Source: Anthoceros angustus
Lineage: Eukaryota; Plantae; Anthocerotophyta
Reading direction: 5' to 3'
DNA: 64,000 bases
Assembly (NCBI GenBank): GCA_010909165.1
Contig: VJWM01000197.1
Span: 124,001-188,000 of the forward strand
Positions 12,197-59,165 of the stretch are shown one piece after another (positions within the stretch are counted from its first letter, which is position 1; every line of letters starts with the position of its first letter). Made by a program: the position numbers and the translations under genes. Under the pieces are notes generated by a model. The model saw only the letters and a list, made by a program, of their open reading frames with translations. It was not told where the DNA came from and made no database searches.

Positions 12197-15100
12197 TCAA
12201 TGCCGATCACCACAGGAACAAGTGCCGTCCGAGAAACGGTGTACTCGGTGTGCGTCTCTAACAACGATCTCTCGCTTCTCAAGATGTGACATAATCTTGG
12301 TGCTGCTGTGACAGTCATTACACATGCGAAGATTCTTCGTGACTATCAAGGTTGTGCCATCAGGAGTGTTCAGGAGACCATATGCCAGCGCCAATTTCTC
12401 GGCATGTCCACACAAGGCATCTTCCTTCGCCTGCTCAGATACAGCCTTCAGTACCAAGCCCGTTTGCGGGACATGGCCACCTTCGTCTTTCAACCTCAGA
12501 TTCACGCTTTTGAGCTTTGAGGATATGTCAGCCCTCTCTTCTCCCACTCTGAACTCGTGCACCTCAGACTTGACTTCGATGCACGCCTTTGCAGGCTTCT
12601 TTCCAGCACTTGCTAATTTTCTCAAGCTTTCTATCCTGTCTACCTCGTCCCACCTCCCTGCCTCTGCGTAGATATTTGCTAGGAGCACATACGAGCTGGC
12701 ATTACTGGGTTCCAGTTGCACGAGACGGTCAAAACATCGCCTTCCACGCTCCATGTCAGCGTGGCTTCTGCACGCACTTAGCAACGACGTCCAGCCCACG
12801 GCATCATTTTCAGAACAGCTGGTTTGCAGCAGATCTTCAGCCTCATCCAAATGACCTGACCGTCCAAGAAGATCGACCATGCAATTATAGTGACACTCCG
12901 TGGGCAGAATCCGATAGTCCTCAACCATCATCCTGAAAAACTCCTGGCCCCTGTGCACCAAACCCGCATGACTACATGCGACCAGAAGGCAAATAAAGGT
13001 AGCACCATCCGGTTTGACACCTTGCAGACGCATTTCCGTGAAGAACTGCACGGCCATTTCACTGTCGCCATGCTCAGCGTAGCCATTAAGCAGGGAGTTC
13101 CATGTCACTACATCTCTAGTGGCTAATCTGTCAAACACTTCCCGAGCCTCTGCCAAACTTCCACATTTTGCGTACATGTCTACCAGGCTGCTGCCAACAG
13201 ATGCATCAGCTTCCAGGCCACTGGCACGAATCTGTGCATAAAGCTGCTTCCCCTGCTGCAAGGCTCCCATGGAGGCACATGTTTGAAGGAGACACACATA
13301 CGTAACACGATCAGCTGGAGTCATGGCCTCCCGTTGCATACTGGCATAGAGAGCCAGGGCTTGTCGACCAAGCCCTAGCTGAGTGTATCCTGCAATCATG
13401 GTAGTCCATGTTACCACATCTTTTGCAGTTAGACTGTCAAACACACTCTGAGCATCCTCTACACTTCCACACTTTAAGTACATATCCATCAGGCAGTTGC
13501 CAATAACTACGTCAGCTTGGAGCCCTCTTTGCTGGATTTGAGCATGAACTTGCTTCCCTTGCTCCAGAGCTCCTATGCTGGCACATGCTTGAAGGAGACA
13601 CACAAACGTGACATGACTGTCTAGCATCACGCCCTCCTGTTGCAAACTGGCAGCCAGAGCCAAGGCTTCTGACCCCAGGCCCTGCTGCGTATATCCAGCA
13701 ATCATGGCAGTGCATGCAACCGCATTCCTCATGGGCAGCAAGTCAAACACTCTGCGAGCAGCTTCCAGGCTTCCACATTTTGCATACATGTCCACCAGGC
13801 TGCTGCCAACTGCAAGATCGGCTTCTAGGCATCTTTCACGGATCTGTTGATGAAGCTGCTTTCCCTGAGACAGCGCTTTGATGCTGGCACATGCTTGAAG
13901 GAGACAGACAAATGTGACATGATCAGCTGGAGTGATGGCCTCCTTTAGCATGTTCTCGTACAGAGCCAGAGCTTCATGTCCCTTCCCCCGGTGGGAATAT
14001 CCTGCAATCATAACAGTCCATGACACCACATCTTTTGCTTGCAATGCGTCAAACACTCTGCGAGCATCCTCCAAGCTCCCGCATTTTGCATACATGTCCA
14101 CCAGGCAATTGCCCACTAGCACATCAGTTTCCAGCCCCCTTTCTTTTATCTGTTCATGAAGCTCCTTCCCATAATGAAGAGCTCCAACACTAGCACATGC
14201 CTTCAGGAGGCATGCAAACGTGACATCATCAGCTATAGACATGCCATCTTGTGGCATGCTTGCATACAGAGCCAGGGCTTCTTCACCAAGTCCATGCTGT
14301 GTATATCCTGCCATCATCGCATTCCAGGTTACCACATTTCTACTGGGCAAGCTGTCAAACACAGTGCGAGCATCTTCCAAGCTCTTGCATTTCGCATACA
14401 TGTCCAGCAGGCTGCTGCCTACAGACACATCAGCTTCTAGGCCCCTTTCACAGATGAGTGCATGGAGCTGCTTACCCTGACGCAACGCTGCAACACTAGC
14501 ACATGCTTTCAGCAGGCACACAAATGTAACGTGATCGGCCGGAGTCAATCCCTCTTGCTGCATAACTTCATAAAGATCCAGGGCCTGCTGACCGAGCCCA
14601 TTCTGAGCATATCCAGCTATCATGGCATTCCACGTCACCACAGATCTGGTCGGCAATGCGTCAAACACTTTTCGAGCATCCTCCAAACTTCTGCACTTGG
14701 CATACATGGTCACCAGGCTGCTATCAACGAAGACATCAGCTGCAACAGCACTCTCCAGAATATCACTATGAACCTCCTTCCCCGAGACCAAATCCCCTGC
14801 AGCAGCACAGGCCTTAAGAACTGCAACAAACACATGGTTGTCTGCCGTCACACCAGACTCCCGCATCTGTCGATACAGTTTAATAGCCTCCCTGGACTTC
14901 CCCTGTCGAGCATGCGCCAAAATAATCGTACCCCAAACGTAAACATCTGGGGCATTCACATCACCGAACACCTGCAACGCTTTCTCCAACTTCCCATGAC
15001 CAGCATACATACCAATGATGTGATTGGCCAAAAACACATCCCCCTCGTACCCAGCTCTCCGAGCAAGAGCATGAACACGCCTCCCAAGCCCCAAATCCTT

Positions 15101-15697
15101 CTGTGCCACACACTTCTTCAGCACACGATAAACAAGACCCCTCCCAACACTACGCCCTTCCTTCACCATAAACTCCAACCCTTCAACAGCCTCCCTCAGC
15201 TCCCGATCCTCACAACCATACCCGAAACCCCCTTCCACCAAAATTCGAGATTCCCCATTTCCTGCACTCGCAGACTCCTTCTCTGCATCCCACCTGGCCA
15301 GCTCCGAATCCACCCAGCCAGGCTTCCCATAGCCATTCAACCACAGAGCCTGGTCGTACGTCTTGTGCCTGAAGTCGGGATGGCGAGAACTCCTCTTCTC
15401 CAGCCTGTTGTCCCACCACTTTGCAGGATCCTGAAAGAAGAGCTGCCACAGAACATCCTGACTCTCCTTCTGCGCAACGCCATTGCTTGAGCGCGTCCTT
15501 CCAGCACAAGCTGGAGGTGGGTCGCATCCACCAATCTTGTGGGCCGAAGGCCTCCTCCCAAAGCCAAGCTGGTCATCTGCCTCCCTGTTGTAAGGGCAAT
15601 GTGCCTCCTTGAAATGCAATTCTTCGAAGGCACGTCCGCCATCGAGCCACCAAGCTTGCTTCCCTGAAACCACATTGCGTACGCAGGAAAGCTGCAT
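12197..15697 (-). CDS. PLS-class PPR protein with E domains and DYW:KP (KPAxA, DRH-type) deaminase domain and N-terminal OSB-type PDF motif; candidate organellar U-to-C RNA editing factor
   Basis: Intact intronless 1166-aa ORF with about 7 repeats of a ~102-aa PPR triplet (VVTWNAMIAGY...FVCLLKACAS...SSLVDMYAKCGSL). C-terminus KKPAKACIEV...HAEKLA...CNDCH...CSCGDRH. aa 83-130 LWQLFFQDPAKWWDNRLEKRSSRHPDFRHKTYDQALWL. Confidence 0.95.
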   Translation of the reverse strand: MQLSCVRNVVSGKQAWWLDGGRAFEELHFKEAHCPYNREADDQLGFGRRPSAHKIGGCDPPPACAGRTRSSNGVAQKESQDVLWQLFFQDPAKWWDNRLEKRSSRHPDFRHKTYDQALWLNGYGKPGWVDSELARWDAEKESASAGNGESRILVEGGFGYGCEDRELREAVEGLEFMVKEGRSVGRGLVYRVLKKCVAQKDLGLGRRVHALARRAGYEGDVFLANHIIGMYAGHGKLEKALQVFGDVNAPDVYVWGTIILAHARQGKSREAIKLYRQMRESGVTADNHVFVAVLKACAAAGDLVSGKEVHSDILESAVAADVFVDSSLVTMYAKCRSLEDARKVFDALPTRSVVTWNAMIAGYAQNGLGQQALDLYEVMQQEGLTPADHVTFVCLLKACASVAALRQGKQLHALICERGLEADVSVGSSLLDMYAKCKSLEDARTVFDSLPSRNVVTWNAMMAGYTQHGLGEEALALYASMPQDGMSIADDVTFACLLKACASVGALHYGKELHEQIKERGLETDVLVGNCLVDMYAKCGSLEDARRVFDALQAKDVVSWTVMIAGYSHRGKGHEALALYENMLKEAITPADHVTFVCLLQACASIKALSQGKQLHQQIRERCLEADLAVGSSLVDMYAKCGSLEAARRVFDLLPMRNAVACTAMIAGYTQQGLGSEALALAASLQQEGVMLDSHVTFVCLLQACASIGALEQGKQVHAQIQQRGLQADVVIGNCLMDMYLKCGSVEDAQSVFDSLTAKDVVTWTTMIAGYTQLGLGRQALALYASMQREAMTPADRVTYVCLLQTCASMGALQQGKQLYAQIRASGLEADASVGSSLVDMYAKCGSLAEAREVFDRLATRDVVTWNSLLNGYAEHGDSEMAVQFFTEMRLQGVKPDGATFICLLVACSHAGLVHRGQEFFRMMVEDYRILPTECHYNCMVDLLGRSGHLDEAEDLLQTSCSENDAVGWTSLLSACRSHADMERGRRCFDRLVQLEPSNASSYVLLANIYAEAGRWDEVDRIESLRKLASAGKKPAKACIEVKSEVHEFRVGEERADISSKLKSVNLRLKDEGGHVPQTGLVLKAVSEQAKEDALCGHAEKLALAYGLLNTPDGTTLIVTKNLRMCNDCHSSTKIMSHLEKREIVVRDAHRVHRFSDGTCSCGDRH

Positions 15698-15949
15698 CCG
15701 CAGGATTTGCTGTCTCCCCTTGCTCGGTTGGTCGATCTCTCAGATTCCTACACCCGAATAACCTTACTCAAAATTCCCCAGTTCTCAGCGAGGAATTTTC
15801 AACAAAGATAAAATAGAATCATTTAAACAAATATTAATTAAAAAATTGATGATTAAAATTCTAAAATAGATCAAGACAACTACATAGATACATATTAAAT
15901 CGGAGATGAGGTGAACCCATCTACTAAAAAGACATACAAGGGAACCTAT

Positions 15950-15975
15950 TATGGAATACCGATCTGGTCACACGG
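15950..15975 (+). repeat. Left TIR (26 bp)
   Basis: Exact reverse complement of 27810-27835. Confidence 0.97.
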
Positions 15976-16586
15976 GAGTGTGTGTGTGACATCCTTTTTT
16001 TTTCGGTGTACGCTACGAGAATATGCCATGGAATCTTTTAGATACTCACGTATAATACATGCCACATCAGCTTCACGAGGTTTCTACGCGGGGAAAAAAC
16101 ATTCTATCACACGTTCATCGGCTTGGTGTTCCGATGGTGTCATACAGATCTTTTCTTGTTAGTGGTTTTTAGGGTTTCCATCGGATCAGCACACATACAT
16201 GGGAAAGAGGCGGGCAACACATACATACAGGAACTTTTGTTTGCAAGTATGGCCCGCGTTTGCCGAGAAGCTGAATGCAAATCCTCCGCTTAGACAGGTT
16301 GCTTTCACTGTATGTGCAGGAAGGACAGGATGTGGGAGCATTCACTACGTTTCGGTGTGGTTCAATACTAACATGCTTCTGTTATGCTTGCAGTTGATGG
16401 CGGGGGAATGACGGAAGATGATAGTAATTTGAATCAGCATCCACTCACCTGGGCATCAACACCCTGTTCCTCATCGCATCATGCCTCGAGTGAGTGACCC
16501 TGCGTGTTTTAGGAGACGGGACATGTGAGGACGAACCCTAACGCTTTTTGTGCACTGAGCATATTAGGTGATGGTGCGGCGTGTAG

Positions 16587-16928
16587 CGTGTTGCACCTTT
16601 GTTTCACGTTTTTTGATTAGTCAGGCAGCCAGGACTGATTGAATGCAAGTGCCTTGCTTTGCAGGCACCTTCAGAAGGATTTCGCAAATAGGATGCTCAT
16701 ACAACCTCGGCAAATGAAGGAAATTCGACGCTCACACACACAACATCTTCAAGTGACACCGGTATTCATGCAGCTCCGTGTTGTTTCCTTACCGTGTTGC
16801 ACCTTTGTTTCTCGATTTTTGTACAATGTGGCAGCCAGGACTCACATTGTGCAAGGGTCTTGCTTTTCAGGCAACTTCAGAAGGATTTCGCCGACGTCAT
16901 GGTCATACAGGCTCGGCAACTGAAGGAA
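16587..16928 (+). repeat. ~140-bp direct repeat (period 206 bp) inside the transposon, each copy containing a splice-acceptor-like TTGCTTT(T/G)CAG
   Basis: CGTGTTGCACCTTTGTTTC...CTTCAGAAGGATTTCGC...TGAAGGAA at 16587-16722 and 16793-16928. Confidence 0.75.
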
Positions 16929-18479
16929 CCCAGTCTTGTGATGCACCATTCACTGCCTCAGACGGGAAAGGTGGCACCTGTGAATCTCAAGTGCAACGTC
17001 TGTTGGCGTCTGCGAAATTTTGCAAGTCACAATGATGTGCCTTGATAGTGATTACAGTGTAGTTGTGTCATTATGATTTAAAATCCCTAGAACTAGCCGT
17101 GGAACACAATCTTGAAGCAACAAAACAAACCGAAAAGCCAACACTTGTGCGCAGTAACTCATGCTTGCACAATTGCAGCCACAAAAACCACATGTTCAAG
17201 TTTGCACTCCCACCTCATGGTGGGAGGTCTCAAAACACCTACCTACAAAAAAGCCTACAACCTGCTCCGCTCAATCTGGAAAGAGTCGTAGAGCAGGGCC
17301 TCCATCCTCTTGTGCCCCGGTCAGTGGCCCCTCGCTTAGCTCGGTGGGCGCCTCGTGACTGAGGAGGAGCCCTGTGAGGAAGGCAAGGCAGGCCATGGCA
17401 TACCATGGCGCCGCTGCGCTGTGGAATTGGGGTGGAGGTGGAGCAAGCAGCATCCCATGAAATGGAAAGGCGGTGGGGAAAGGGAGAGGTGGGCGGGGCT
17501 AGCAGGAGGGGAGGGGTCTCGGGTGCGCTCCTTGAGACATGGATGCACATGCACTGCTGCGTTCATGATATCCATGAACGCCCGCACTCGGGCTTCCACA
17601 CACTGCATGTTAGGGGCACTTGGGGCATCCTCTCCATCATGCCTCCACCTCGATGCAGCGCAACCTAAGGTCGCGCACCTTGTCCACGACCTCCGTGGCC
17701 GGCGCCACTCATGGGCGCATCGATAGCAATCAATGATGATCGAGTGGTCGCCATAATGCCCGAAACTCACAGGCGCGGCTCTGGCCGCCTTGGGATGTGC
17801 CCCGTTCTTCTTGGTGCTCACTCCCGAGACAGGAGTTCGCACCTCGGCGTCGCCCCCTCCATCTTCCCCACAGCAACTTGCGCCCGGGGCTTGGGTTTGC
17901 GCCCGCCGTAGTTCACCCTCTTCTTCTTCCGCCCACAAACCCAGTGACCTCAGGCTCCACAATGAGCTCGGCCAACTCGCTCGAGTGGCCGCCTCCCTCA
18001 GCGCGATTCGCCTCCCAAACGACGCTCAATCTTGGTGGCGCTCACATGTGCAGTGCGGGGAAGTGCCATCCGAATCATAGATGATTCGGTGATGGCTGCT
18101 CAAATCACGCCTTCAAGACCGCAACCCCAACCCATCATGCGGCTATTAGCATTGTTGTCAATCCCATACGCGCAAAGCGCGCCTTTTGCCGGCGCGTGCG
18201 CCGGCGCACCCGGACGGGTGCACGCTTTTGCGTGCACGCGCGGACCGGTGCAGCGCGCTTGTGCGCTGTGGGTCTGGAACAACGGCGCGCACGGTGCGCT
18301 TACCTCGACTGCTGGAGCCCGATGCGCGCCTGAAGTCTGGCGCGACCGGCACATGAGGTGCCCCAGCACGTACTTATGCACGCCTTGGTGTCATCTAAAG
18401 CCCAACTGTAGATGTCTCTGGTTAATGTATCTGGTTGATGTATCTGGTTAATGGAGTCGTGGTTGTCTTTTTATTGCAG

Positions 18480-21400
18480 ACATTCGGGACTATGCTGGCG
18501 TTTCTCCAAAAGGAAATAGTTTTAGGGTTGATGATGACGAAGATGGCCGAACAAGCATGTGAAAGCGATCCTCTCCGGGAGAGCGATGGAGAGGCAAGGA
18601 AAAGGCAGTTCGCAACCACGACCAAAGCACCATCATCAGCAGCTCTGAATAGGGGCAATTTTGATGAGGATTCAATGGAACAAGAAACAGAGAGGTACTT
18701 GCAGCCAGCAGGTATAGATATCCTGGATGACGCTGATAGTGGAGAATATGAAGAGCATGAAACCGCAAATGAAGATGTTGAGGACGACGATGTGCATCAG
18801 ACAACCGACAGAGTTGAAGCCGATGACAACAACAGAGAGGATATACATAGCGAGGGGGCTCAAAACGTTGTCTAATGTCCCAAAGAATCGCCATGCATTG
18901 GAGGATGCCCAGCAGCTTCTACAAAGTCTGGACAGTAGGGTCAAAGAATCTGTGAAGGAGCGAGCCCGTGTACAACCAACCTCAAAGGAGGTAGACGCGG
19001 ATGTTCCAGTTTCACCTGCAAGGACTAAAGGTAAACCGAAAGCAGGGAAAAGAGGAAAGAGGAATGACATTGACGAGACACCAGCGACGGGACGCGTCAT
19101 CACCAAAGCTGTGCTAACGGACAACGACAGAGTAGAGCGAGCAGCATAAGGACCCGTTACATCAAATTCGAGAGTCAGCGCACAAAAAGAGGTGCATTCC
19201 GCATACAGATATGGTTGCCATCACCAAGTTGAGAAGCGCAGACTACATTACTCGTGACGCTCAGATCCGAAGAGTGGATGAATCGTGGGGAAAACATCTT
19301 CTCCGGGAAATTAAAAAGGGACCTGTGCAAGAGGGAGTACTTCCTCTGCTATGTATGATCGATCCAAGGGAGTGCGCAAGCGTGGAGGTCTTTGACAAAG
19401 ACAAGTTGAAAAGGCAGCAGTACACCATGGGAGTATTGGGTGGGAACCACAGCTTCTATGCGTTCCAACGCTGTCACGCGAAGACCGGAGAACTCACACT
19501 TCCAAAGATATGGAAGCTCATATATATCGAGCTTAACCTGTGCAGATGCGTGTCCGCCAGATCACAATGTCAAGGCAGATTTCCGGAAGAGAATGTCTTT
19601 CATTGAGCAAGTCCGCTATATTCACGATGAAATGAAAATTGCGGCTGAGGAGGGTATTAGCATTACAATGGATTGGAAGTACAATCTATATCGGATGCTA
19701 GGCGTCATCGGCGCGCGGATCGGGAAGAAATGCGACTTGTCGACGAGCTGCCGTTATGCATTGCTAGTGTCCCGCCTCATGTGTGGACACGGTGGACGAG
19801 GTTTTCGATCTTTGGGAGAGGGGTGAGCTTCCGAGCAAGGTAACCGAAGAAAGGCAGCAAGAGGGGAAATCAAAACGGGGTCTTGACATGAGCCGCGGGA
19901 TCCAAATTTGATTATAAAGCCAATGCATGCGACCAATTGGAGAGTTTTCCAGGGCATGCCTCCAGGGGAAGCAGGTGAAAGGATTATGTTGTCTGCGCTG
20001 GAGAAAGTGATTCAAGGCGAGTTGACCGTGAGCGGCATGAAAACGTGGATAACGAAGGCCAAGAAGTTGAATGTCATCCAGACAGCATTTTGCTCTGGAC
20101 TGAGGTGCAATTCATTTGCAGAAGTTGAGCGAGAATACCGAGGCACTCACACCGTAAGATATAGCGAAATTTCAACCGGTGTTTGATCACATTGTAAGTA
20201 CACATGTATTGTCCGCCGAGTTAGCAAGTCGCAAAACTAGTTTGCGCTCGTCTTCATGTTGCACCTATGAGCGTCTCCATCCTGTGCGGAACCTGAAAAA
20301 GAAGAGTACAAAGAGAAGATGATACCCGATAGCTTCAAAGAGCACATCAATGCGGCAAGAAATTGGAAGAGGGTGGAAGATTTGCGAGAGTGGCGAGAGG
20401 AAGACAACGACGCAAAACTAGACATTTTCCATGTTCAAAAGCAAGCAAAGGTCCGTTACGGTAATAGCGGTGATATTCGTGAAATGGCTGCCTACTTGGG
20501 GAAAAGAGAATACAAGTTGGTCGTCGATTTACCAAGGGGCAATTTATCGGAGACATGGGATAAGGAGATGACATGTGAGGATTTGGAGAAGATAATGGAT
20601 GGATTCATGACAATCACCGAATGCAAGACTTTCCGTGATATTCATGCATGGACGGACGGATCAGGGATGTCCAAATGCACCGCGAAAATGGTGTGAAAAG
20701 GGGGTTTATACAATGGTGCAGGAGAAAGACAACTTGGTTTGGACGAGGGACTTTACGAGAATCATGAGTACATGACGTGGGGTATGGTGTTCACCCAACG
20801 TTGAAGATATGAGGAAGTGCGTGCATTGTCCAATAGTGCGGTAGATTGGAGCAATGCTGCGTTTATTCGACATAGCGCGATCGTGAAGAAACTTTTGAAT
20901 GTGTCCAACGATGGCCATGTTGTTTCTCCTTACCAAAAGCCAATAGGGTTGATGGTCCTGCTATACGACCTATTCACAGAAAGAGGGGAATGGGTTATAG
21001 ATGGATGCTCGGAAAGCGGGAGTGGAATACTTGCGGCATTCTTGGAAGGCGGGCGTATTCTGTTGACCAAGAACAGAGGAGCACAATATTCATCGAACAG
21101 CGTATTACAGGCCATGAAGTGTTTCCTACAGACGAGGAAGAGTTGACCACCAAACCACACAAACGTGGACATCCGGTTTTGCCAAAGAGATGGCAGGGAG
21201 ATCAGTTAAGCCCAGGGCCGCAACGCTACACTTGGTTCAAGGAACATGCGCACCCATCGACCTTCAAGACTTGAGTCAATCACAGGGGCCCCAGAAGAAG
21301 AAGGAGAAAGATGGCAAAAAAGGTCCGGAAAACCCTAAGAACCCAGACGGGAAAGAAGTGCGAAGACCAGAAGAAAGCGACCCTACTTGGGACAACCAAC

Positions 21401-21540
21401 ATCTGGAGACGTTTGGCTTTGGCGAATCCCAAGGTGGAGAAACGCCATATCTTCCTCTTGCTATTTACGATCCGCAACGGCTGCAGGAGAACGATGACAT
21501 CGTCGTCCCGAGGACGGAAAGACAACATTCGCCAAACTAG
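18480..21540 (+). pseudogene. Transposon cargo gene: acidic N-terminal region, ParB-like domain, helical linker, beta-class N4C/N6A DNA methyltransferase domain, charged tail (frameshifted)
   Basis: Successive + strand fragments: YTMGVLGGNHSFYAF (GGNH 19439-19450), DHNVKADFRKRMSFIEQV, GDIREM..YKLVVDLPRG...TWDKE (motif IV-like, 20526-20540), SPYQKPIGLMVLLYDLFTERGEWVIDGCSESGSGILAA (motifs X and I, 20928-21026), GRRAYSVDQE..IEQRI. Order IV...X-I-II is that of beta-class MTases. Confidence 0.75.
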
Positions 21541-22299
21541 CTAGAAACATACACCGTTGTCATACATGTTGGAATTTAAATGTGAGTGCGCGCACAAGTT
21601 TGTGCACAAATAGCGTGGCGGTCGAAGGAAAAGGCGATCGTGAATGTCTCGGATGGTTTTCCTCGTAATTCGATGCACAATGTGACATATCGTGTATCGC
21701 AACAATAATTGAAATGTTTGGGGTGACATGTCGGAGAAATACCAAAAGGTCGATTCCAAAGGCGGATTGTGCGAAGGGGTCCGGAACGTCCGTGTACCAA
21801 AAGGGGGTTTCGGAGAAACCCTTCGCAATGCATTTATTCCTTGTGCACGCTAGATGGTGCCGACCTTGGGAGGATGACCAACGCGTGATTTTGTGCTGGG
21901 GAGGGGCGGGGAGGAAGCGGGTGGGGGTTGGGGTTTCGTAGTGGCCGCAGCGGGGTGATTTTCCGCCACGGTGGGGTGACGGGGTGGCGGAGCGGGTGGG
22001 GTCGGGGCTGCAGTGGCGCAGAATGGGGTGAGGCAAAGTTTTGCGGTTGTGGGAAAGGCAAGTTGGGTGCAGCGGTAGAGGGACGGCAACCGACAGGCGC
22101 TGGTGCGAGAGCTAGGATGAGGCCTGAATGGCCAGACGGCCCAACTGGCCGCCGAACCCGGCCACGAATCGGCAGCTTGAGTTGGAAGAAAAACGACGCG
22201 CGGCGACTCTTGAGCACGCAACCATGCGGTTGACGCGCTACCACCGAAAAGATGCAGAACGACTCTACCGCGCCTAAACCCTCCACGCCTGCACCAAGG

Positions 22300-23083
22300 T
22301 TTGCAGACTCCGAGACCGGAGTGGACGATGAGGAACCCGCAATCACTTGCAGGTATGAGTGGCAGCGGCCATCCAAGGTAGGTTGTCCGAGTGCAGGTGG
22401 GTGCGGCTGCACCATCCACGGGGAGGTTCATGTGCTTTGGACGCGCTGCACCGACGTGCATTACCTTGCAGGAAGGTGCAATGACGGTCGCGGGCTTCGG
22501 TTGTGTGCAGACCGGGCGTCTCGCACAGCCACGGGTGGCAACGACCTCAAGCGGGCCGTGGGGAAGATAGGTGGGAGATGCAATGCCCTCGAGAGTACAT
22601 CGCTGGGTGGCCCATGGTTCCCATCAACTATAGGGAGCTCTCCGAGTTTTTGGACTTTGTTGAGGACCATCAGAGCCAATGCCTTCGTATGGAGGGGTAT
22701 CCAGAGAGACTTGCAGTCCTATACCACCTGCACCGGCGGGGGACAAATGGGATGGAGTGGCGGTGGACAAATTACTGCGAGAGCGCTTACCGTCTGGTGG
22801 AGTGCCATGTTTTCATGCATCGTATTTGTGATTGTACAAAGCCGGAATGGAAGGTGTCTGTGGAGCGACCACAAGCGATGGATGACCTGCGGTTTGGTTC
22901 GCCAATTATGCTGTGAGCCACCATGACTTGGTGGAAAGATGGCCCAGGAGGTTCTACGAGTTGGTGGATTTCGTGCGATATGCGGAGCTCAATTGGAATG
23001 AGAAGACCGCCGCGCTGTTCGATGAGATTAACCTGCAGACGAAAGCCCATGTGGTGGCATATTTGGCAGACGTGCACGCTTGA
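22300..23083 (+). pseudogene. Transposon cargo ORF of unknown function (frameshifted or spliced)
   Basis: ORF 22503-22916 (WPMVPINYRELSEFLDFVEDH...) continues in another frame as HDLVERWPRRFYELVDFVRYAELNWNEKTAALFDEINLQTKAHVVAYLADVHA*; protein-like composition. Confidence 0.4.
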
Positions 23084-23775
23084 GGCGAGGAGCAGTCGGA
23101 GCCCAACGCCTGCAAGGCATGCACAGACTCATAGTGATGGGTGCAACTGCAGAGGGCATGCAGCTGCAGAGGAGCATTTCCCGGCCTGCCCTGCAGCCGC
23201 ACCTACTGTGCCACATGTACGTGCCATTCGCGGTTTGGCACTGAGTTGTGTTCGGTGCAAATTGTATGTAGATGAGAAGAACGCCTGCCGGGTGTTAGGG
23301 GTTAGGTGTGCGACGAGAGTTGCAGCACATGGCGATTGTAAGCCGGCACGGCATGTGCGATGTCGTTTTCAGTAATATGCTTTCTGCCCACAATGTTGTC
23401 GAGGCGGTCGCAGACACCGCAAGTTATCGCCTTTGCTGTTGTGACCAACTCCCGATTGGCTGCATCGCCGCAACATCGCAGCCGACTGCATGCGGTTGCA
23501 ATGTACTAGGGAGACCACCAGTGAGCGTGGCCTTTTACCAAGGCGGATTCGGTCTGAAATAATGCGGTCAGAAGCCCTCCGAAAATTACAAGGCCATCGC
23601 TGCACATTTGTTTCCGTGTACATTGAATGACTGCCTTGATGGCGCCCCACCCAGCCCATGAGGGAGGGGCTGGTGGTGCAGCTCAAGCAACAGCGGTGGG
23701 CGGGATGTCATGGACGCTTGGGGCAGGGGATGCTGTTAACGCGCCAAAGAGCTCGCATGGCATGTTGCTGTTGTT

Positions 23776-24357
23776 GTGGATGCCATTAGGAAGGACACAC
23801 GCCTGCGAGCTGCATGCCTAACAATTGAGATAGGGACGCCTGCAGTGACAATGCTGTGCCAGAAGGAAATGGGTGCTTATGTGTGGGATTTCTCAGTCAC
23901 TGAAAAGGAAGCCCTTTACCCATCGCACCGTCTGTCTCATGCAAACGAAAGCATGTTGGAAGGCACCTTGTGGGTTGCGATTGCGAAAGTGATGGAGGGC
24001 AAAGTCCTGCAGTCGGCGAAGTGGGCATGGAAGGTAGTCGAGAGGACGGTGGGGCCGCAGTGGGATCGTCGGCACCTGTGCTTGTGGACTGGGCCTGAGA
24101 GGGCATTGCACCTCGCAGTGGACATTGAGTGCCGGCCGGTGCCATTATGCATCGTGCACAGGGATGTGGATCGCCACAACTTCTTTGTGGGCCGCCACAC
24201 ACTCCCATTTGTGTACAACAGGACGGAGCATTTCATCTGCTACATGGACTTTTCGACCAACGAAGAGGGAGTGTTCCAAGTACTGGAGGTATGTGACCTC
24301 ATCATCAGGGCATGCCACACCATGGGTGGGCGCAAAGGGCACGCGTTGATTGCTTGA
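23776..24357 (+). CDS. 193-aa transposon cargo ORF, unknown function (weak resemblance to Ulp1-like peptidase)
   Basis: Open frame with globular composition. LPFVYNRTEHFICYMDF and a downstream frameshifted QG-CSFHVL loosely recall the His and Cys motifs of C48 peptidases. Confidence 0.35.
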   Translation: MDAIRKDTRLRAACLTIEIGTPAVTMLCQKEMGAYVWDFSVTEKEALYPSHRLSHANESMLEGTLWVAIAKVMEGKVLQSAKWAWKVVERTVGPQWDRRHLCLWTGPERALHLAVDIECRPVPLCIVHRDVDRHNFFVGRHTLPFVYNRTEHFICYMDFSTNEEGVFQVLEVCDLIIRACHTMGGRKGHALIA

Positions 24358-24899
24358 AGATCACATGCTTTCATGTTTGCGCCCTTGTGACTTCTGGACC
24401 CTGGGTTGAGGTAAAGCGTGATTACATCGTTTCGAGTTTTGCCAAGCGGCGGCCGAAGGCTATTGAGGGGAAGGACCAAGGCGTTGCAGCTTCCATGTGC
24501 TTACATATGAGGAATGAGCATGAGTGGCCATGTTTGTGTTGTGATGCTCTCGGAGGCCCATAGTGGCCTGTATAGTAATATGCAGATGTGTGTTGTGTGC
24601 GAGTTGGTGTGGAATGCTCGCAGCTTGTCTACAGTGCAAGAGTGTTTGCACTGCAGACAAGCTGCAAGCATGGTGACCAAAGGAGACCTCACACGGCCGC
24701 GTGCGCTTGCAGCCACGAATCCGCAACACGCAGAGAGGCGCCGCAACATGGTGGTGTGCGTCAGTACCCGCGATCGTGATAACCACCATGCCGGCGCGTG
24801 CGGCCTTCAATCGAAAGCCGCAGAGGCCTGAGCAGGCAGACGACAACCACGCGAACGCCTTCCACGCTAGTGGTGTGCGAGGTGTGCAAGCCACCTTGG

Positions 24900-26330
24900 C
24901 CATCCACAAGGCAGAAGCGCGCCTGTGGAGGAGGCCGATGGCAGCGGCGGGTGGCTCACCCGAATGGCAGGCGGATGATGGGTGGCTTGGGGGCACGCAC
25001 GGGCTGCACCAGGAGGATTGGACCAACGGGGAGGAAGGGCTGCAGGATGAGCAGTGGATGCACTTAGCAGAGGGGAAGAGGCGGCGCAAGGGGAGATGAG
25101 GCGAGGAAGGGGAGGAGGAGGCCGCGTGGTGGAGGCTTCGAGCGCTCACGCCCGAGCGGTGTCACGGCCGGCGGTGCGGCACTTGCAATCGTGGCGGCCC
25201 AGAAAGAGGCTGCCGTGAACTTCCGCTGAGGAATGATGGCCGGCTCCATGCGGCACCCGGAATGGCGCGGCGTGTATGGGAGGCTATCCGTGGTGAGTGC
25301 TGCTCGCACGCTCATGCCCATCACGCAGGCGTCAACGCAGAATACGCCGTTGCACGCAAGTCGATGGAATCGACATCCCAAGGAGGTGTGACATGGTTGA
25401 TCTGACCGGAGGACATGGCCCGCGCGATCCGCATCCGCAGCGTGCGATACACCAACAGCGCCCATGTTCATGTGGCACATGGATTGTGAGTGGTTCCAGT
25501 TTACGCGGTGTGTCTTGTCGCTAGATTGGAATGGGAGCGATTCTTTGCGATTGTCACAAATGGATGTGGTTGGATTGTGTGCGACTATGACAAGGCGTAC
25601 CAATTCTACTTGAGTCCATGGTGCAATAGATGGGGCCACCACTCGTCCCATGGTTGGTCTTTGGAAGATAACAAGCGGGGGACAACCATTTTCAACGCCT
25701 ATGTGGATGCAATGAGGAGGTTTGGCCATCCCAGTGATTCGCCTGACTATGCAAGCACAACAACAGATTAGGAGGATCGAGGCCAAGGGCACACGGCAGC
25801 AACTTCATCTGTGGCCCCTCCGTGCACAACCAGGTCAGACTGTGGTTGCTTGCGATGCCTTTGTCAACGAGGAGGTATGGTGCAGGGTAGTAATTGCAGC
25901 CTTTCTGTAGAGGATTGAGCATTTTTGGCGGTCATTGGGGGTGAAGTGGGCGTTCCTGTACGAGGGGTACATGATGGATTTGGTGAGGAGTAGCGAATTG
26001 GACATCACCAACCCCTAGCACATCCATTCCCTGCATGTCACCTTCATGCCCACCATGAGGGCGGAGCTGGAGCGTTGGAGGCAGGTGTGGAACAAGCACA
26101 GGGTGCGCAGGATAAGGGCCGCGGACAGGGACATCCCCGGCCATGTTGCTTGCAATAGCGTTCCAGGAAGAGGCTCGGCTCCAAGGGCGGGTGCAGCCAC
26201 CCGCATATGGGACTGCGGATGACGATGGCGAGGAGTTCGATGCCTGTGGTCCTTAGTATGCACAGAACGTGGCCCCCGAGATGCCACCGCTAGGTGTGAT
26301 TGAGCTGTTGTCCGGGGTGAGTCTTGGTGC
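24900..26330 (+). pseudogene. IS3EU-type DDE transposase (IS3/IS481-like integrase core) with introns
   Basis: APMFMWHMD (D 25482), YDK, VHGAIDG (25614-25634), DNKRGTTIFNAYVDAMRRFGHPS..DY (D 25745) and GSNFICGPSVHNQ. Removing the GT-AG intron 25834-25910 joins this to RIEHFWR (E 25917), followed by LDITNP*HIHSLHVTFMPTMRAELERWRQVWNKHRVR. 5' boundary approximate. Confidence 0.85.
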
Positions 26331-26340
26331 AAAGCACACT

Positions 26341-27124
26341 TGTCTTTGTCGCTAGATTGGAATGGGAGCGATTCTTTGCGGTTGTCACAAATGGATGTGG
26401 TTGGATTGTGTGCGACTATGACAAGCTGTACCAATTCTACTTGAGTCCATGGTGCAATAGATGGGGCCACCACTCGTCCCATGGTTGGTCTTTGGAAGAT
26501 AACAAGCGGGGACAACCATTTTCAACGCCTATGTGGATGCAATGAGGAGGTTTGGCCATCCCAGTGATTCGGTGGACTATGCGGTGAGCACAACGATAGG
26601 CGGACTGGGAGCGATGCGAGGCCAAGGGCACACGGCAGCAACTAATCCATGCCCCTCCGTTACTGTGGTCGTTGTGGTTGCTTGCGATGCCTTTGTCGGA
26701 GGAGGTATGGTGCGGGGTAATAGCTGCGGCTGTCTGCGAGGATTGAGCATTTTGGCGGTCATTGGGGAGAAGTGGGCGTTCAGCAAGGGTACATGATGGA
26801 TTTGGTGAGGAGTAGCGAATTGGACATCACCAACCCACAGCACATCCATTCCACACATGTCACCTTCATGCCCACCATGAGGAGCGTTGGAGGCGGTGTG
26901 GAACAAGCACTGGTCGCAGGATAAGGGAGCATGACGAGACATCCCGCCATGTTGCTTGCAATAGCGTTCGAGGCTCGGCTCCAAGGCGGGTCGACCACCC
27001 GCATATGGGGCGGATGGCGATGGCGAGGAGTTCGATGCTGTGGTCCTTAGTGACGTGGCCCAAGATGCCACCGCTAGGTGTGATTGTTGTCTGGTGAGTC
27101 TTGGCTGCCCGCACACTTGTCTTT
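26341..27124 (+). repeat. Tandem second copy of the 3' half of the transposase gene (copy of 25511-26340)
   Basis: TGTCTT(T)GTCGCTAGATTGGAATGGGAGCG restarts at 26341 and both copies end GCACACTTGTCTTT; they differ by many small indels. Confidence 0.9.
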
Positions 27125-27809
27125 AATGTGTGTAGGTTGTACCGCTTCTCATGTAAGGTTCCATCCCTTTAGCACATTTGCTAAACGAATGTGTACGCTT
27201 GTCTGGGTGAACCGCATGTCGCGAGGACAATGCCTATGCAAAGGGCTTGGAGGGCATGGACTTCCTCCCGATATGTACCGCTTTGCACAGCGACATTGTG
27301 CGGGGAGTGCGAGGCGAGGCACGCCGAGTACCTCCAGCGTGGGCCGGCAGGCGGGCGTGGCGTGGGCGGGGATCACTCTGCTGCTCGTAGTCCGATGCAG
27401 TCATGGCCCGATGCCAAGCTGCAGTCTTGCACGCAAGGGCAAACGCACTAAGCCGCATTGCAAATAGAGACGATGATTGTAGCGCAAACGCCATTGCACA
27501 GCGTAAGCGCAGCGCTAACGCAACCGCTGGCAACCCTTACACCTTGTGGATGCCGTGGTCGCAGACATGGTATGTTGCATGCCGCAATGGCGCGGCGACG
27601 CAAATGACCGCAACGCAACCCTAACCCCAAAAGAAGAAAAGTTTCTGTGTGTCGTGGAATCATTTTGTGTATCATGTGGTAGGTTGACCACATTGGGACA
27701 CTGGGGGGCCGCAACCTGGCAGATGTGGTCATGCATGACATGCCGAAATAGTTCCCCAGATGCGGCGGGACTATTTCTTTCTGTCCATAACCCTAAAAAA
27801 ATGTGGATG

Positions 27810-27835
27810 CCGTGTGACCAGATCGGTATTCCATA
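27810..27835 (-). repeat. Right TIR (26 bp)
   Basis: CCGTGTGACCAGATCGGTATTCCATA followed by TSD ACCTAT. Confidence 0.97.
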
Positions 27836-27841
27836 ACCTAT

Positions 27842-56975: not shown

Positions 56976-59165
56976 TCAGAAATACAAGGGCAAAGTTCCA
57001 TTGATTGCATATCTGCAAGTTGGGCATGTTCCACTCGTCCTGCGATGCTCAGCCAAACAAACGTCACAATACTGACCATGAAGGCATGGCAGGATCACCA
57101 CATTCCGACGTCTGTCCTGACAGATGTGACATAATATCTGCGTCTCAATGCTCTGTTTCTCCGATTCAATCCTGTCCATCGCCACTTCTAGCGTGTGCAC
57201 TTGAGCCCGGAAAGCCAAGTTCTCAGCCTCTAGTTTTAGCATGTTCTCCTTCAAGGTGCGTGCAGAACCCTTAGCCTCGATCATCTCCCCCATCAATCTT
57301 TGCACCTCTCTCTCATACTCCCGCTTCCGTATCCGTACGGAAGATTTGCCCGCTCCCATCTCCGCTTGCAATTCTTGGAGAGAATTATCTGTCTCCGATT
57401 CGGTTACAGCATGCGCTATTTCCGTCTCTGACTGCCTTTGCCGCAATCTCCTAGACTCAAACACCATCACTGCCTCCATGACAAGTTTCGAATGTCGAAC
57501 GCTGTGGGCATGCATTTCCATGATGAAATCTACAAGACCTTGTGACGCATCAACACTCCCGATAGCTTCGAGACAAGCCTTGTTGATATTTTCGACACAA
57601 GACCTGAAATTTTCATTGATCTCGGATAACCGCTTCTGAACAACTCGGTCCAAGGGAGTCCGATCATGAGGCTCGTCCGACCATGGTCTCTGGAGCTCCA
57701 ACTCGTAGGCCCTGGTACGGGACAATTGCAAGGCAGGGGATAAGCCGAACGTAACAGCTCCTTGGCACATTGTGCCGCAGGGATAGCGCGGGATCTTCAT
57801 GCCGTCACCAAACCTGCTTCCGAAGGCTGCGCTTATCCTCGCCCCCAGGTACTTGGGAACCGAGTACTCACCGATCAGGGACAGTCCCTTCACGTCTGGC
57901 CTTAGGTGCTCTTCGATCAGGTTGATGATTCTGTCTGCCACTGGAGCGCATATCTGCTCCCAGTCCACATGAATTCCCCCAGGTATGAGATCCTCCACAT
58001 CACCACGGTCCCGGTCGTATTCCTTCCAAGCTGTCTGCAGCATTTCAGGGAACTTGAACCAGTTTTTGTTCGGGATCAAGTCCAAGTGAAAACAAAAGCT
58101 GCGCCATTCCTTCCGCAGTTTCGTCCTGATGGCAGGGTTCTGCCTCTCCAGCTCATGGAAGCAGCCAATCCTTGCCCGCACCATGTTGTAGAACTTGTGG
58201 TCCACGTCATTGAGACAACAACCGCTGGCGACGGTACGCCCTTCCACAAGAAGGAAGCCCCCTTCACACTCCTTCAAAATGACAATGTTGGTAGCGTCGT
58301 TCCGAACATCTACCATCAACACCTCAGATCCTCCCTCCAATCTGAATCCGGTAAAGCAATGCAGGGCTGCGGCTTCCCACTCCAGAACAAAGGACAGAGG
58401 ATGCGGACTTGCCAGTGCTGCAGCTTCTGGCGGGCAAAAGGGGCCTGCCACCATGCCCGCTCTCTCCACGCACTCGCGCAAGGTCTGTAGTGCGGAATCA
58501 TCCCAAATGCTGGGCACAGTGAGGCACCACTGGATGTCCCCCTTGGTTACGTCATGGCCAGTGGCGTTCACACAACCAAGGGCAAAGTTAGAGAGCTCGG
58601 TGAAATAGTCAGTGATAACGGTGACCAGTGACAGATCGTGGGGAATGTCCCCTAGCCCTGCATTTGCGCTCCTTCGCTCTCCCTGCCACCACCCCTGGGC
58701 CGGCGCCTTGCCTGAGCTAAGATGCCCCCAAAAATTGGCCACATACACGCCTTTGCTTACTTCCGACGTCGACCCTGCTGCCAAGTCCTTTTCATGACGC
58801 ATGTCCGCGTCGAAGCCCCATTCTGAAACCTTATATTCCTCCGTGAGGGAGCCTGTTTCCGTTTCCTTCACATAGTACAGACTCATGGGCATTGCCCAAT
58901 ATGAAAGCTTCACATCCCCGTGCAAGCCGCAAGAGAAGGAACAGCGTTCATCACCGAAATGAATGCCTACTACTCTCAGCTCCGCCATTCGGAAATGGTC
59001 CACAGTCCCCTCGTGCACCGGCCGTCCTCTGCTACTTGTGTTGAAATGACCAGCTTGCCTCCTCAAAATCTGCTGGGGGCTGGTGCACATGTACACCAGA
59101 ATCTCATCGTACGTACTGTAGAGGGAGGGCCGCGGCCAGAGGAAAGGAGAGGACGCATTCAACAT
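56976..59165 (-). CDS. HSPA12-like Hsp70/actin-fold domain, coiled coil, C-terminal C3HC4 RING finger
   Basis: Intronless 729-aa ORF (alternative start M60 at 58988). IQWCLTVPSIWDDSA, FVLEWEAAALHC, LSLIGEYSVPKYL and GAVTFGL match HSPA12-type signatures. Heptad-rich ELQAEM...LEAENLAFRAQV. CHICQDRRRNVVILPCLHGQYCDVC...CPTCR. Confidence 0.85.
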   Translation of the reverse strand: MLNASSPFLWPRPSLYSTYDEILVYMCTSPQQILRRQAGHFNTSSRGRPVHEGTVDHFRMAELRVVGIHFGDERCSFSCGLHGDVKLSYWAMPMSLYYVKETETGSLTEEYKVSEWGFDADMRHEKDLAAGSTSEVSKGVYVANFWGHLSSGKAPAQGWWQGERRSANAGLGDIPHDLSLVTVITDYFTELSNFALGCVNATGHDVTKGDIQWCLTVPSIWDDSALQTLRECVERAGMVAGPFCPPEAAALASPHPLSFVLEWEAAALHCFTGFRLEGGSEVLMVDVRNDATNIVILKECEGGFLLVEGRTVASGCCLNDVDHKFYNMVRARIGCFHELERQNPAIRTKLRKEWRSFCFHLDLIPNKNWFKFPEMLQTAWKEYDRDRGDVEDLIPGGIHVDWEQICAPVADRIINLIEEHLRPDVKGLSLIGEYSVPKYLGARISAAFGSRFGDGMKIPRYPCGTMCQGAVTFGLSPALQLSRTRAYELELQRPWSDEPHDRTPLDRVVQKRLSEINENFRSCVENINKACLEAIGSVDASQGLVDFIMEMHAHSVRHSKLVMEAVMVFESRRLRQRQSETEIAHAVTESETDNSLQELQAEMGAGKSSVRIRKREYEREVQRLMGEMIEAKGSARTLKENMLKLEAENLAFRAQVHTLEVAMDRIESEKQSIETQILCHICQDRRRNVVILPCLHGQYCDVCLAEHRRTSGTCPTCRYAINGTLPLYF

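Follow-up and report, generated by a model that had tools for sequence, protein, structure and literature searches.

Does a transposon of a land plant carry a gene for modifying DNA and, if so, in what state is this gene? The question was raised by a 64,000-nt stretch of the Anthoceros angustus genome (contig VJWM01000197.1, 124,001-188,000, forward strand), which is called the window below and whose positions are used throughout. In this window an earlier note had described a ParB-like domain fused to a beta-class amino-methyltransferase and carried as transposon cargo. Our analysis indicated that the 18.5-21.5 kb region is likely to be the decayed accessory gene of an 11.9-kb transposon of the IS3EU/GingerRoot type with terminal inverted repeats (TIRs). 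The gene would thus belong to a known class of transposon accessory gene, present in a new host and probably in a new carrier superfamily.

All five motifs described in the earlier note were found on the + strand: GGNH at 19439-19450 (frame 2), YKLVVDLPRG at 20511-20540, PYQKP at 20928-20942 and WVIDGCSESGSG at 20991-21026 (these three in frame 0), and GRRAYSVD at 21044-21067 (frame 2). The permuted order that it had read, with motif IV before X, I and II, was recovered by a profile search, in which profile positions 8-44, 157-227 and 217-233 followed each other along the sequence. The profile was built from five phage methylases (fetched via tblastn matches and all assigned to PF01555 by Pfam) and was searched against the 1298 stop-to-stop pieces of the whole window, both strands included. 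The C-terminal block at 20805-21143 was matched with an E-value of 4e-11, a value that is inflated given that the phage sequences were chosen through matching this same piece; here the profile segment vHPTqKPvalleyLi..GdvVlDnvaGSGttgvAa aligned with VSPYQKPIGLMVLLYDLFTERGEWVIDGCSESGSGILAA. The piece 20817-21146 was also matched by the PHROG family phrog_18293, 'methyltransferase' (E = 1.3e-6), and by 268 phage records in a tblastn search (best E = 3e-4), and among the phage matches listed most were annotated as DNA methyltransferases, adenine- or N4-cytosine-specific. Its ESM-Atlas neighbours carried N6_N4_Mtase in 97 of 100 cases. When the N-terminal sub-profile was used, the top piece among the 1298 was the adjacent upstream piece on the same strand, which carries DLPRG, and VVDLPRGNLSETWD aligned with the phage sequence CDLPYGTT..WD. 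The spacing between DLPRG and PYQKP is 135 codons, compared to about 140-150 in the phage enzymes. Taken with the upstream motif IV, the profile, PHROG, tblastn and Atlas results indicate that the remnant of a permuted beta-class N6_N4-type amino-methyltransferase domain is real, as judged from the sequence, in agreement with the class named in the earlier note.

Several results weigh against this assignment. The N-terminal half alone gave an E-value of about 1, which is not significant, and a profile of the middle region of the methyltransferase found no match in any frame. Pfam searches with nine pieces at E up to 1 returned no N6_N4_Mtase/PF01555 match; the domain is split over at least three pieces. 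Word-indexed protein searches with both methyltransferase pieces gave no matches, and neither did a tblastn search of the DLPRG piece against phages. Frame 1 at 20611-20772 had been considered by eye as motifs V-VIII and was dropped, as the middle profile finds nothing. Furthermore, the catalytic position reads D-L-P-R (AGG) and is without the aromatic residue of (D/N/S)-P-P-(Y/F/W) or of DLPY, the latter being the natural form of motif IV in the nearest phage relatives. The earlier note had read this arginine correctly, as well as the glutamate at a motif I glycine, and a motif I alignment shifted by two residues would still leave the SGSG loop. DLPR was common to all contigs of the repeat family that were compared (the family is described below) and no contig had another residue at the arginine codon, so the arginine is not private to this copy. 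In this lineage the family may at no time have been a canonical methyltransferase.

The gene lies inside a transposon, as the earlier note had proposed. The element spans 15950-27835 (11.9 kb) and is bounded by perfect 26-bp TIRs and a target site duplication (TSD), and the 26-bp TIR occurs in two copies only in the window, compared to 0 expected by chance. Its parts, apart from the gene itself, are as follows.

15944-15949, no strand: left TSD, ACCTAT, the same six bases recurring past the right end at 27836-27841
15950-15975, + strand: left TIR, TATGGAATACCGATCTGGTCACACGG, a perfect match to the right end, with similarity fading beyond 26 bp
23740-24354, + strand: third open reading frame (ORF) of the element, with a possible likeness to kinases (IVHRDVDRHN ... 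MDFS; translation, weak Atlas neighbours)
25401-27094, + strand: remnants of the transposase, in which about 830 bp are tandemly duplicated (Pfam rva_4 match, self-comparison, translations)
27810-27835, - strand: right TIR, the perfect 26-bp partner of the left TIR
27836-27841, no strand: right TSD, ACCTAT, identical to the left TSD

IS3EU elements have 6-bp TSDs and termini of the form TAYGG..CCRTA (PMC12730594), a signature found here as TATGG..CCATA ends with ACCTAT on both flanks. IS3EU and GingerRoot belong to a single lineage, which has TA..TA ends, 6-bp TSDs and an integrase-related transposase and whose plant range is bryophytes and lycophytes (PMC6839031). In the transposase region, the integrase core PF24764 (rva_4) matched 26019-26111 within the piece 26019-26219 (E = 5.6e-5, 23.4 bits, 31 residues). 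The termini, the 6-bp TSD and the rva_4 remnant point to an IS3EU/GingerRoot-type TIR transposon as the probable carrier. Besides the ends, the TSD and a transposase that here may be of the integrase-related DDE kind, this carrier and the published lineage have in common the occurrence in bryophytes and lycophytes and the habit of taking up extra genes (TET/JBP and kinase in rust fungi). They differ in that the TIRs are perfect over about 26 bp here and 100-150 bp long in GingerRoot, in that the transposase match is a 31-residue remnant, and in that the IS3EU/GingerRoot papers mention no methyltransferase or ParB-like cargo. Against the assignment stand the rva_4 score of 23.4, which is below the Pfam cut-off of 26, and the fact that the ends can also be read as 27-bp TIRs (TTATGG../..CCATAA) with a 4-bp TSD, CCTA.

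From 18.4 to 21.5 kb, the + strand carries the pieces of the gene one after another, distributed over three frames.

18531-18872, + strand: likely start (ATG ATG ACG AAG ATG) and acidic N-terminal region, frame 0, ended by TAA at 18873-18875 (translation)
18958-19134, + strand: basic, Lys/Arg-rich region, frame 1, colinear with homologues up to ...DNDRV (alignment to the contig L001)
19135-19146, + strand: frameshift 1, frame 1 to 2, where the homologue is contiguous (..DEDRL-A-SDNTKSE..) and one base separates the window blocks
19136-19483, + strand: first part of the ParB-like candidate domain, frame 2 (tblastn with P0007 and P0008, Atlas neighbours)
19484-19562, + strand: frameshift 2, from frame 2 into frame 0, close to the ATATATAT run at about 19520 (colinear high-scoring segments in different frames)
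19563-19709, + strand: second part of the ParB-like candidate domain, frame 0 (HN..A..RK..SFI..V.Y; P0007 residues 187-235)
19710-19839, + strand: linker with two more frame changes (0 to 2 to 1, 19710-19790), covered by no homologue
19840-19919, + strand: candidate intron 1, GTAACC..AG, 80 nt, joining frame 1 to 0 in phase (read from the letters only)
19920-20153, + strand: middle region, frame 0, without a recognised family (Pfam, translation)
20154-20306, + strand: candidate intron 2, GTAAGA..AG, 153 nt, which would excise the stop at 20184-20186 (likewise a reading of the letters)
20307-20693, + strand: N-terminal half of the methyltransferase, frame 0, with VVDLPRG at 20520-20540 followed by ..WD (profile positions 8-44)
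20694-20804, + strand: two frame-0 stops, TGA at 20694-20696 and TGA at 20802-20804, between motifs IV and X (translation)
20805-21043, + strand: C-terminal half of the methyltransferase, frame 0, with SPYQKP at 20925-20942 and VIDGCSESGSG at 20994-21026 (profile positions 157-227, PHROG, tblastn, Atlas)
21030-21045, + strand: frameshift 3, frame 0 to 2, between motifs I and II (profile, translation; the blocks adjoin)
21044-21540, + strand: motif II/III and C-terminal tail, frames 2 and 1, last stop at 21538-21540 (translation)

The methyltransferase part was found to follow the GGNH domain as the earlier note had stated, colinear with it on one strand, within 2.1 kb and inside the TIRs. The fusion that it had read from this arrangement is less secure, as the pieces do not form one open frame in this broken copy and a single fused ORF is not demonstrable. 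At the N-terminal end, the acidic region weakly resembled the acidic N-terminus of P0011 in composition (E = 0.05), frame 0 could be linked to frame 1 by a weak GT..AG candidate seen by eye at 18870-18957, and residues 82-139 of the frame-1 piece were 32% identical to residues 116-172 of the L001 ORF (E = 0.013). Across the second frameshift the distance from GGNH to MSFI is 142 nt in the window and 48 codons (144 nt) in P0007. In the linker, a family contig of depth 93 differed from the window by five small indels within 19710-19839; the frame near 20120 is uncertain because most family contigs are without one base there. A candidate GT..AG pair at 20691-20813 could excise both TGA stops, and at the third frameshift frame 0 yields AAFLEGGRILL whereas frame 2 yields LGRRAYSVDQEQRSTIFIEQRI, the continuation of the profile (positions 217-233).

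The relatives of the GGNH domain were few. When the GGNH piece was searched with HMMER against 1.84 billion representatives, two true relatives were found, P0007 and P0008; eight other matches were discarded as repeat proteins sharing a 20-residue stretch, and a further search added a third intact relative of the GGNH region, P0011. In tblastn these three matched the window with E-values of 1e-17 to 1e-10 in two colinear blocks, the first being 34% identical to residues 42-157 of P0007 and the second 37% identical to its residues 187-235; for P0008 the identity was 40% (E = 2e-10). The contig of P0008 (L002, 795 bp, from an ENA metagenome) is AT-rich (31% GC) with short GT..AG introns and is therefore eukaryotic. 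Among the relatives, P0008 comes nearest to a canonical motif with its GGNHRR, and in its contig the conserved HN... block resumes past the first intron, so the called 103-aa protein is a truncated gene model of a eukaryote. Two other contigs, L001 and L003 (Logan SRR33208241), have about 51% GC and uninterrupted ORFs of 364-369 codons that are 69% identical to each other, each with an acidic/basic N-terminus and a GGNH domain, and both end before any methyltransferase part. Another organism thus has intact paralogues, which are possibly transcribed. The contigs of P0007, P0011 and P0008 end too early to reveal what follows the GGNH domain.

The ParB-like label given to this domain in the earlier note found support in Atlas features and in the motif pattern and none in family searches. 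The Atlas neighbours of the GGNH piece included cnidarian and mollusc hypothetical proteins, fungal DUF3723, ParB_N and DUF6551, and 64 of the 100 were without a family; the model of the top neighbour superposed on ParB_N proteins with TM scores of 0.58-0.65. By eye, the succession strand-helix-strand-(Y.i.GGNHR..A)-helix-strand fits the pattern of the ParB/sulfiredoxin (Srx) N-domain, most clearly in P0008. Set against this, neither the window pieces nor P0007, P0011 and P0008 had a ParB_N match in Pfam or NCBIfam, hhalign against P1 ParB gave a probability of 0.1, and a profile search of the Protein Data Bank (PDB) with the GGNH domain found nothing. Two AlphaFold models were poor (pLDDT, the predicted local confidence, of 41 and 54), and Foldseek with the better one (pLDDT 54) gave no match at E <= 0.001. 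The arginine of the P-motif (G-x-x-R) is present in P0008 (GGNHRR), while the window and P0007/P0011 read GGNHS; loss of this arginine abolished nucleoside triphosphate (NTP) binding in tested ParB-fold proteins (PMC12704722). In searches of other sources, the GGNH piece had no tblastn match in phages, P0008 gave nothing useful against phages and plasmids, and P0007 and P0008 had no matches in metagenomes. On balance, we consider the N-terminal GGNH domain to be probably ParB-like.

The copy in the window is dead and makes no enzyme: it has at least three certain frameshifts and further stops, and the transposase region is duplicated and broken. The duplicated transposase blocks, 95-100% identical, lie within 25515-27090 (e.g. 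25515-25752 and 26346-26582 with 96-98% identity), and an in-frame TAG at 26013-26015 in the first repeat corresponds to CAG at about 26835 in the second. The family to which the copy belongs was examined in an independent DNA run, apparently from the same organism. It is a multi-copy family, with 156 DNA contigs that are 85-100% alike and with a word depth of up to 436, compared to about 4-8 on the copy-specific parts. Many small indels distinguish the other copies, a G of the G-run just past the arginine codon is missing from one variant of high depth, and 58 contigs of the independent run are at least 99% alike. The earlier note had suggested that the copy may be dead or mis-assembled on the basis of two substitutions; the first alternative was confirmed by lesions well beyond these two, and mis-assembly is unlikely because two host ORFs nearby, of 1166 and 729 codons, are unbroken and because of the 58 nearly identical contigs. 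In the one RNA run of the same sample no contig matched the gene, and no RNA run was listed with the gene. Perfect ends around a decayed interior suggest a non-autonomous copy that was mobilised in trans.

Could the gene instead be intact and functional, with its frame changes due to introns, assembly errors or programmed shifts? The frame-keeping GT..AG candidates at 19840-19919, 20154-20306 and 20691-20813, and perhaps 18870-18957, would fit this view, and the perfect TIRs and TSD suggest a young insertion. Some of the breaks may indeed be introns of this kind. However, three of the frame changes lie within colinear alignments whose blocks are 0-2 nt apart, so that there is no room for an intron, and the unbroken host ORFs nearby, the 58 contigs at least 99% alike and the lack of a matching RNA contig make an intact gene highly improbable. 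Still harder to credit is the view that there is no methyltransferase at all and that the motifs match by chance, in sequence that is non-coding or comes from unrelated transposon DNA. Pfam was empty on all pieces, as were the word-based searches with both methyltransferase pieces, but chance of this kind would have to produce the profile match at 4e-11, the PHROG match at 1.3e-6, 268 phage records and 97 of 100 N6_N4_Mtase neighbours, with motifs IV, X, I and II in correct order and spacing. The decayed accessory gene is therefore retained, and what remains to be weighed is its N-terminal domain and its carrier.

That methyltransferase and transposon are real and the GGNH domain is an unrelated eukaryotic transposon-associated domain, which would make 'ParB-MTase fusion' a misnomer, is a minority possibility of some weight. 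It is favoured by the missing ParB_N matches for the window piece and its three relatives, by the hhalign and PDB results, by AlphaFold and Foldseek, and by the many Atlas neighbours without a family. It is disfavoured by the ParB_N, DUF6551 and DUF3723 neighbours with the TM scores of the top model, by the ParB/Srx strand-helix pattern in P0008, by an Ectocarpus accessory protein that was named ParB-like by its authors, and by the fact that fusions of a ParB fold with N6_N4 are common in phages. As to the carrier, a Sola1-type transposon (27-bp TIR, 4-bp TSD CCTA) in place of IS3EU is improbable. The ends are readable as TTATGG../..CCATAA between CCTA copies and the published precedent gene rides in a Sola1 element, but this reading requires a 1-in-16 coincidence, compared to 1-in-4 for the 6-bp reading, and it has against it the rva_4 integrase-core match in the transposase region and the exact fit of TATGG..CCATA and ACCTAT to the published IS3EU signature. 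A methyltransferase of a DIRS-type retrotransposon was rejected outright: there is no reverse transcriptase, the ends are of the TIR/TSD kind, and DIRS methyltransferases belong to a different clade.

With an IS3EU/GingerRoot-type accessory gene as the preferred reading, the ancestral gene would have had the order acidic and then basic low-complexity N-terminus, GGNH domain, middle region and C-terminal methyltransferase. The GGNH domain would probably, if not demonstrably, have had a ParB/sulfiredoxin fold, and the C-terminal domain would be a circularly permuted beta-class enzyme of the PF01555 type, with DLPR where the nearest phage relatives read DLPY. In intact members, the protein would be anchored on DNA, perhaps that of the element itself, by its N-terminal domain, and the methyltransferase would write N6-methyladenine (6mA) or N4-methylcytosine (4mC) there; the sequence does not discriminate between the two, and the N6_N4 domain has repeatedly switched between them (PMC8885841). 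Such methylation would mark the element or counter host silencing, a role proposed by analogy with that suggested for the Ectocarpus Sola1 gene, so that the function of the gene family is put forward here by inference. The present copy, with its transposase rearranged, could move only in trans. Two results do not favour binding to the element's own DNA: palindromes are not enriched in the element (7 of at least 10 bp, 11 expected), and there is no enrichment in this copy of repeated k-mers or motifs usable as binding sites.

The nearest published counterpart is Sola1-1_Ec32 of Ectocarpus, which encodes a 1104-aa accessory protein with ParB-like and N4C/N6A methyltransferase parts (Dinatale et al. 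2025, PMC12477816). It is likened to the window gene by its described architecture and not by sequence homology. In both cases the gene lies in a large cut-and-paste transposon beside the transposase, an N-terminal ParB-like part is combined with a prokaryote-type N4C/N6A methyltransferase domain, and the proposed role is binding and modification of the element's own DNA. Here, in contrast, the host is a land plant, the carrier looks like IS3EU/GingerRoot, the copy is broken, and gene and transposase remnants share one strand, while the two lie on opposite strands in Ectocarpus. In red-algal Plavaka elements, an N6A-methylase and a ParB-like protein are encoded as separate genes.

Fusions of a ParB fold with N6_N4_Mtase are enriched in phages (PMC12704722). 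The phage beta-class methylases (PF01555) have the same permuted order and the HPTxKP...D..xGSG block in common with the window gene, the nearest ones carry the DLPYG..WD variant of motif IV, and the combination of ParB and methylase is a common architecture among them. The window piece is about 30-44% identical to them over about 60-95 residues and has Arg at the catalytic aromatic position; it also differs by its low-complexity N-terminus, its candidate introns, its transposon context and an N-terminal domain without a ParB_N match.

Two eukaryotic enzymes of the class have proven 4mC activity and the canonical (T)SPPY motif: bdelloid N4CMT, which is fused to a chromodomain (PMC8885841), and DN4MT1 of Marchantia (bioRxiv 10.1101/2021.02.12.428880). 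Like the window gene, they are permuted amino-methyltransferases of the PF01555 type with prokaryotic ancestry in a eukaryotic nuclear genome. They are single or tandem host genes, in contrast to the broken multi-copy DLPR cargo described here, and the papers mention no ParB part; the likeness is one of class.

How mobile DNA opposes host silencing, or turns it to its own use, can be seen in transposons that bring along modifiers of chromatin or DNA, of which the TET/JBP genes of fungi, the SET genes of oomycetes and the ParB-like methyltransferases of algae are known examples. The gene class as such has already been published for algal transposons (PMC12477816), and the literature search found no paper on this kind of cargo, either for land plants or for IS3EU/GingerRoot elements. 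If true, an IS3EU/GingerRoot carrier in a land plant would lengthen this list by a host group and a carrier superfamily that are both new to it, and such an element would be a plausible source of horizontally derived plant amino-methyltransferases; the dead copy, with its non-canonical catalytic motif, contributes anatomy only. A broader scenario is put forward tentatively and is itself rather unlikely. The GGNH/methyltransferase module might be shared by unrelated transposon superfamilies (IS3EU here, Sola1 in Ectocarpus), in parallel with the TET/JBP genes of fungal transposons, and DLPR might be ancestral in the plant lineage and not a lesion. In that case the protein would be a methyltransferase whose catalytic motif is without precedent, or else an accessory factor that binds DNA and is not catalytic, and the family could be a pool from which host 4mC writers were domesticated.

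A few further features of the element and its surroundings were observed. The ORF at 23740-24354 has the pattern HRDxxxxN...DFS, which resembles the catalytic loop and DFG of protein kinases, and its Atlas neighbours are fungal kinases of the FunK1 type with a weak score of 0.88; Pfam gave no match for it. Kinase genes are carried by IS3EU families of rust fungi (PMC12730594), and the third ORF is possibly kinase-like, which we regard as a lead only. On both sides of the gene, at 18170-18330 and 21586-21610, there are GCGC-rich clusters of short palindromes (GTGCGCCGGCGCAC, GCGTGCACGC, GTGCGCGCAC and TTTGTGCACAAA), which may represent a CpG-island promoter or binding/target sites. GTGC-N0-6-GCAC is weakly enriched over the whole element (7 observed, 3.0 +/- 1.6 expected), and a 13-bp tandem repeat, ATGTATCTGGTTA, is present in 3.2 copies at 18412-18453, the likely start codon at 18531 following about 80 bp downstream.

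The window as a whole is land-plant nuclear DNA, and its genes include intact intronless PPR-DYW as well as Kelch, P-type ATPase and amino-acid transporter genes. The PPR-E-DYW gene at 12197-15697 (- strand, 1166 aa) is intact and intronless, with PPR, E motif and DYW deaminase matches in Pfam, and the left end of the transposon, at 15950, falls in the likely promoter region of this gene, only about 250 bp upstream of the start codon. An intact ORF of 729 aa at 56976-59165 (- strand) has a C3HC4 RING finger at its end. Between 37700 and 46000 there is an AT-rich block (GC down to 23%) in which long runs of (TA)n occur together with tandem repeats that measure about 1.4-2.0 kb and are 96-100% identical.

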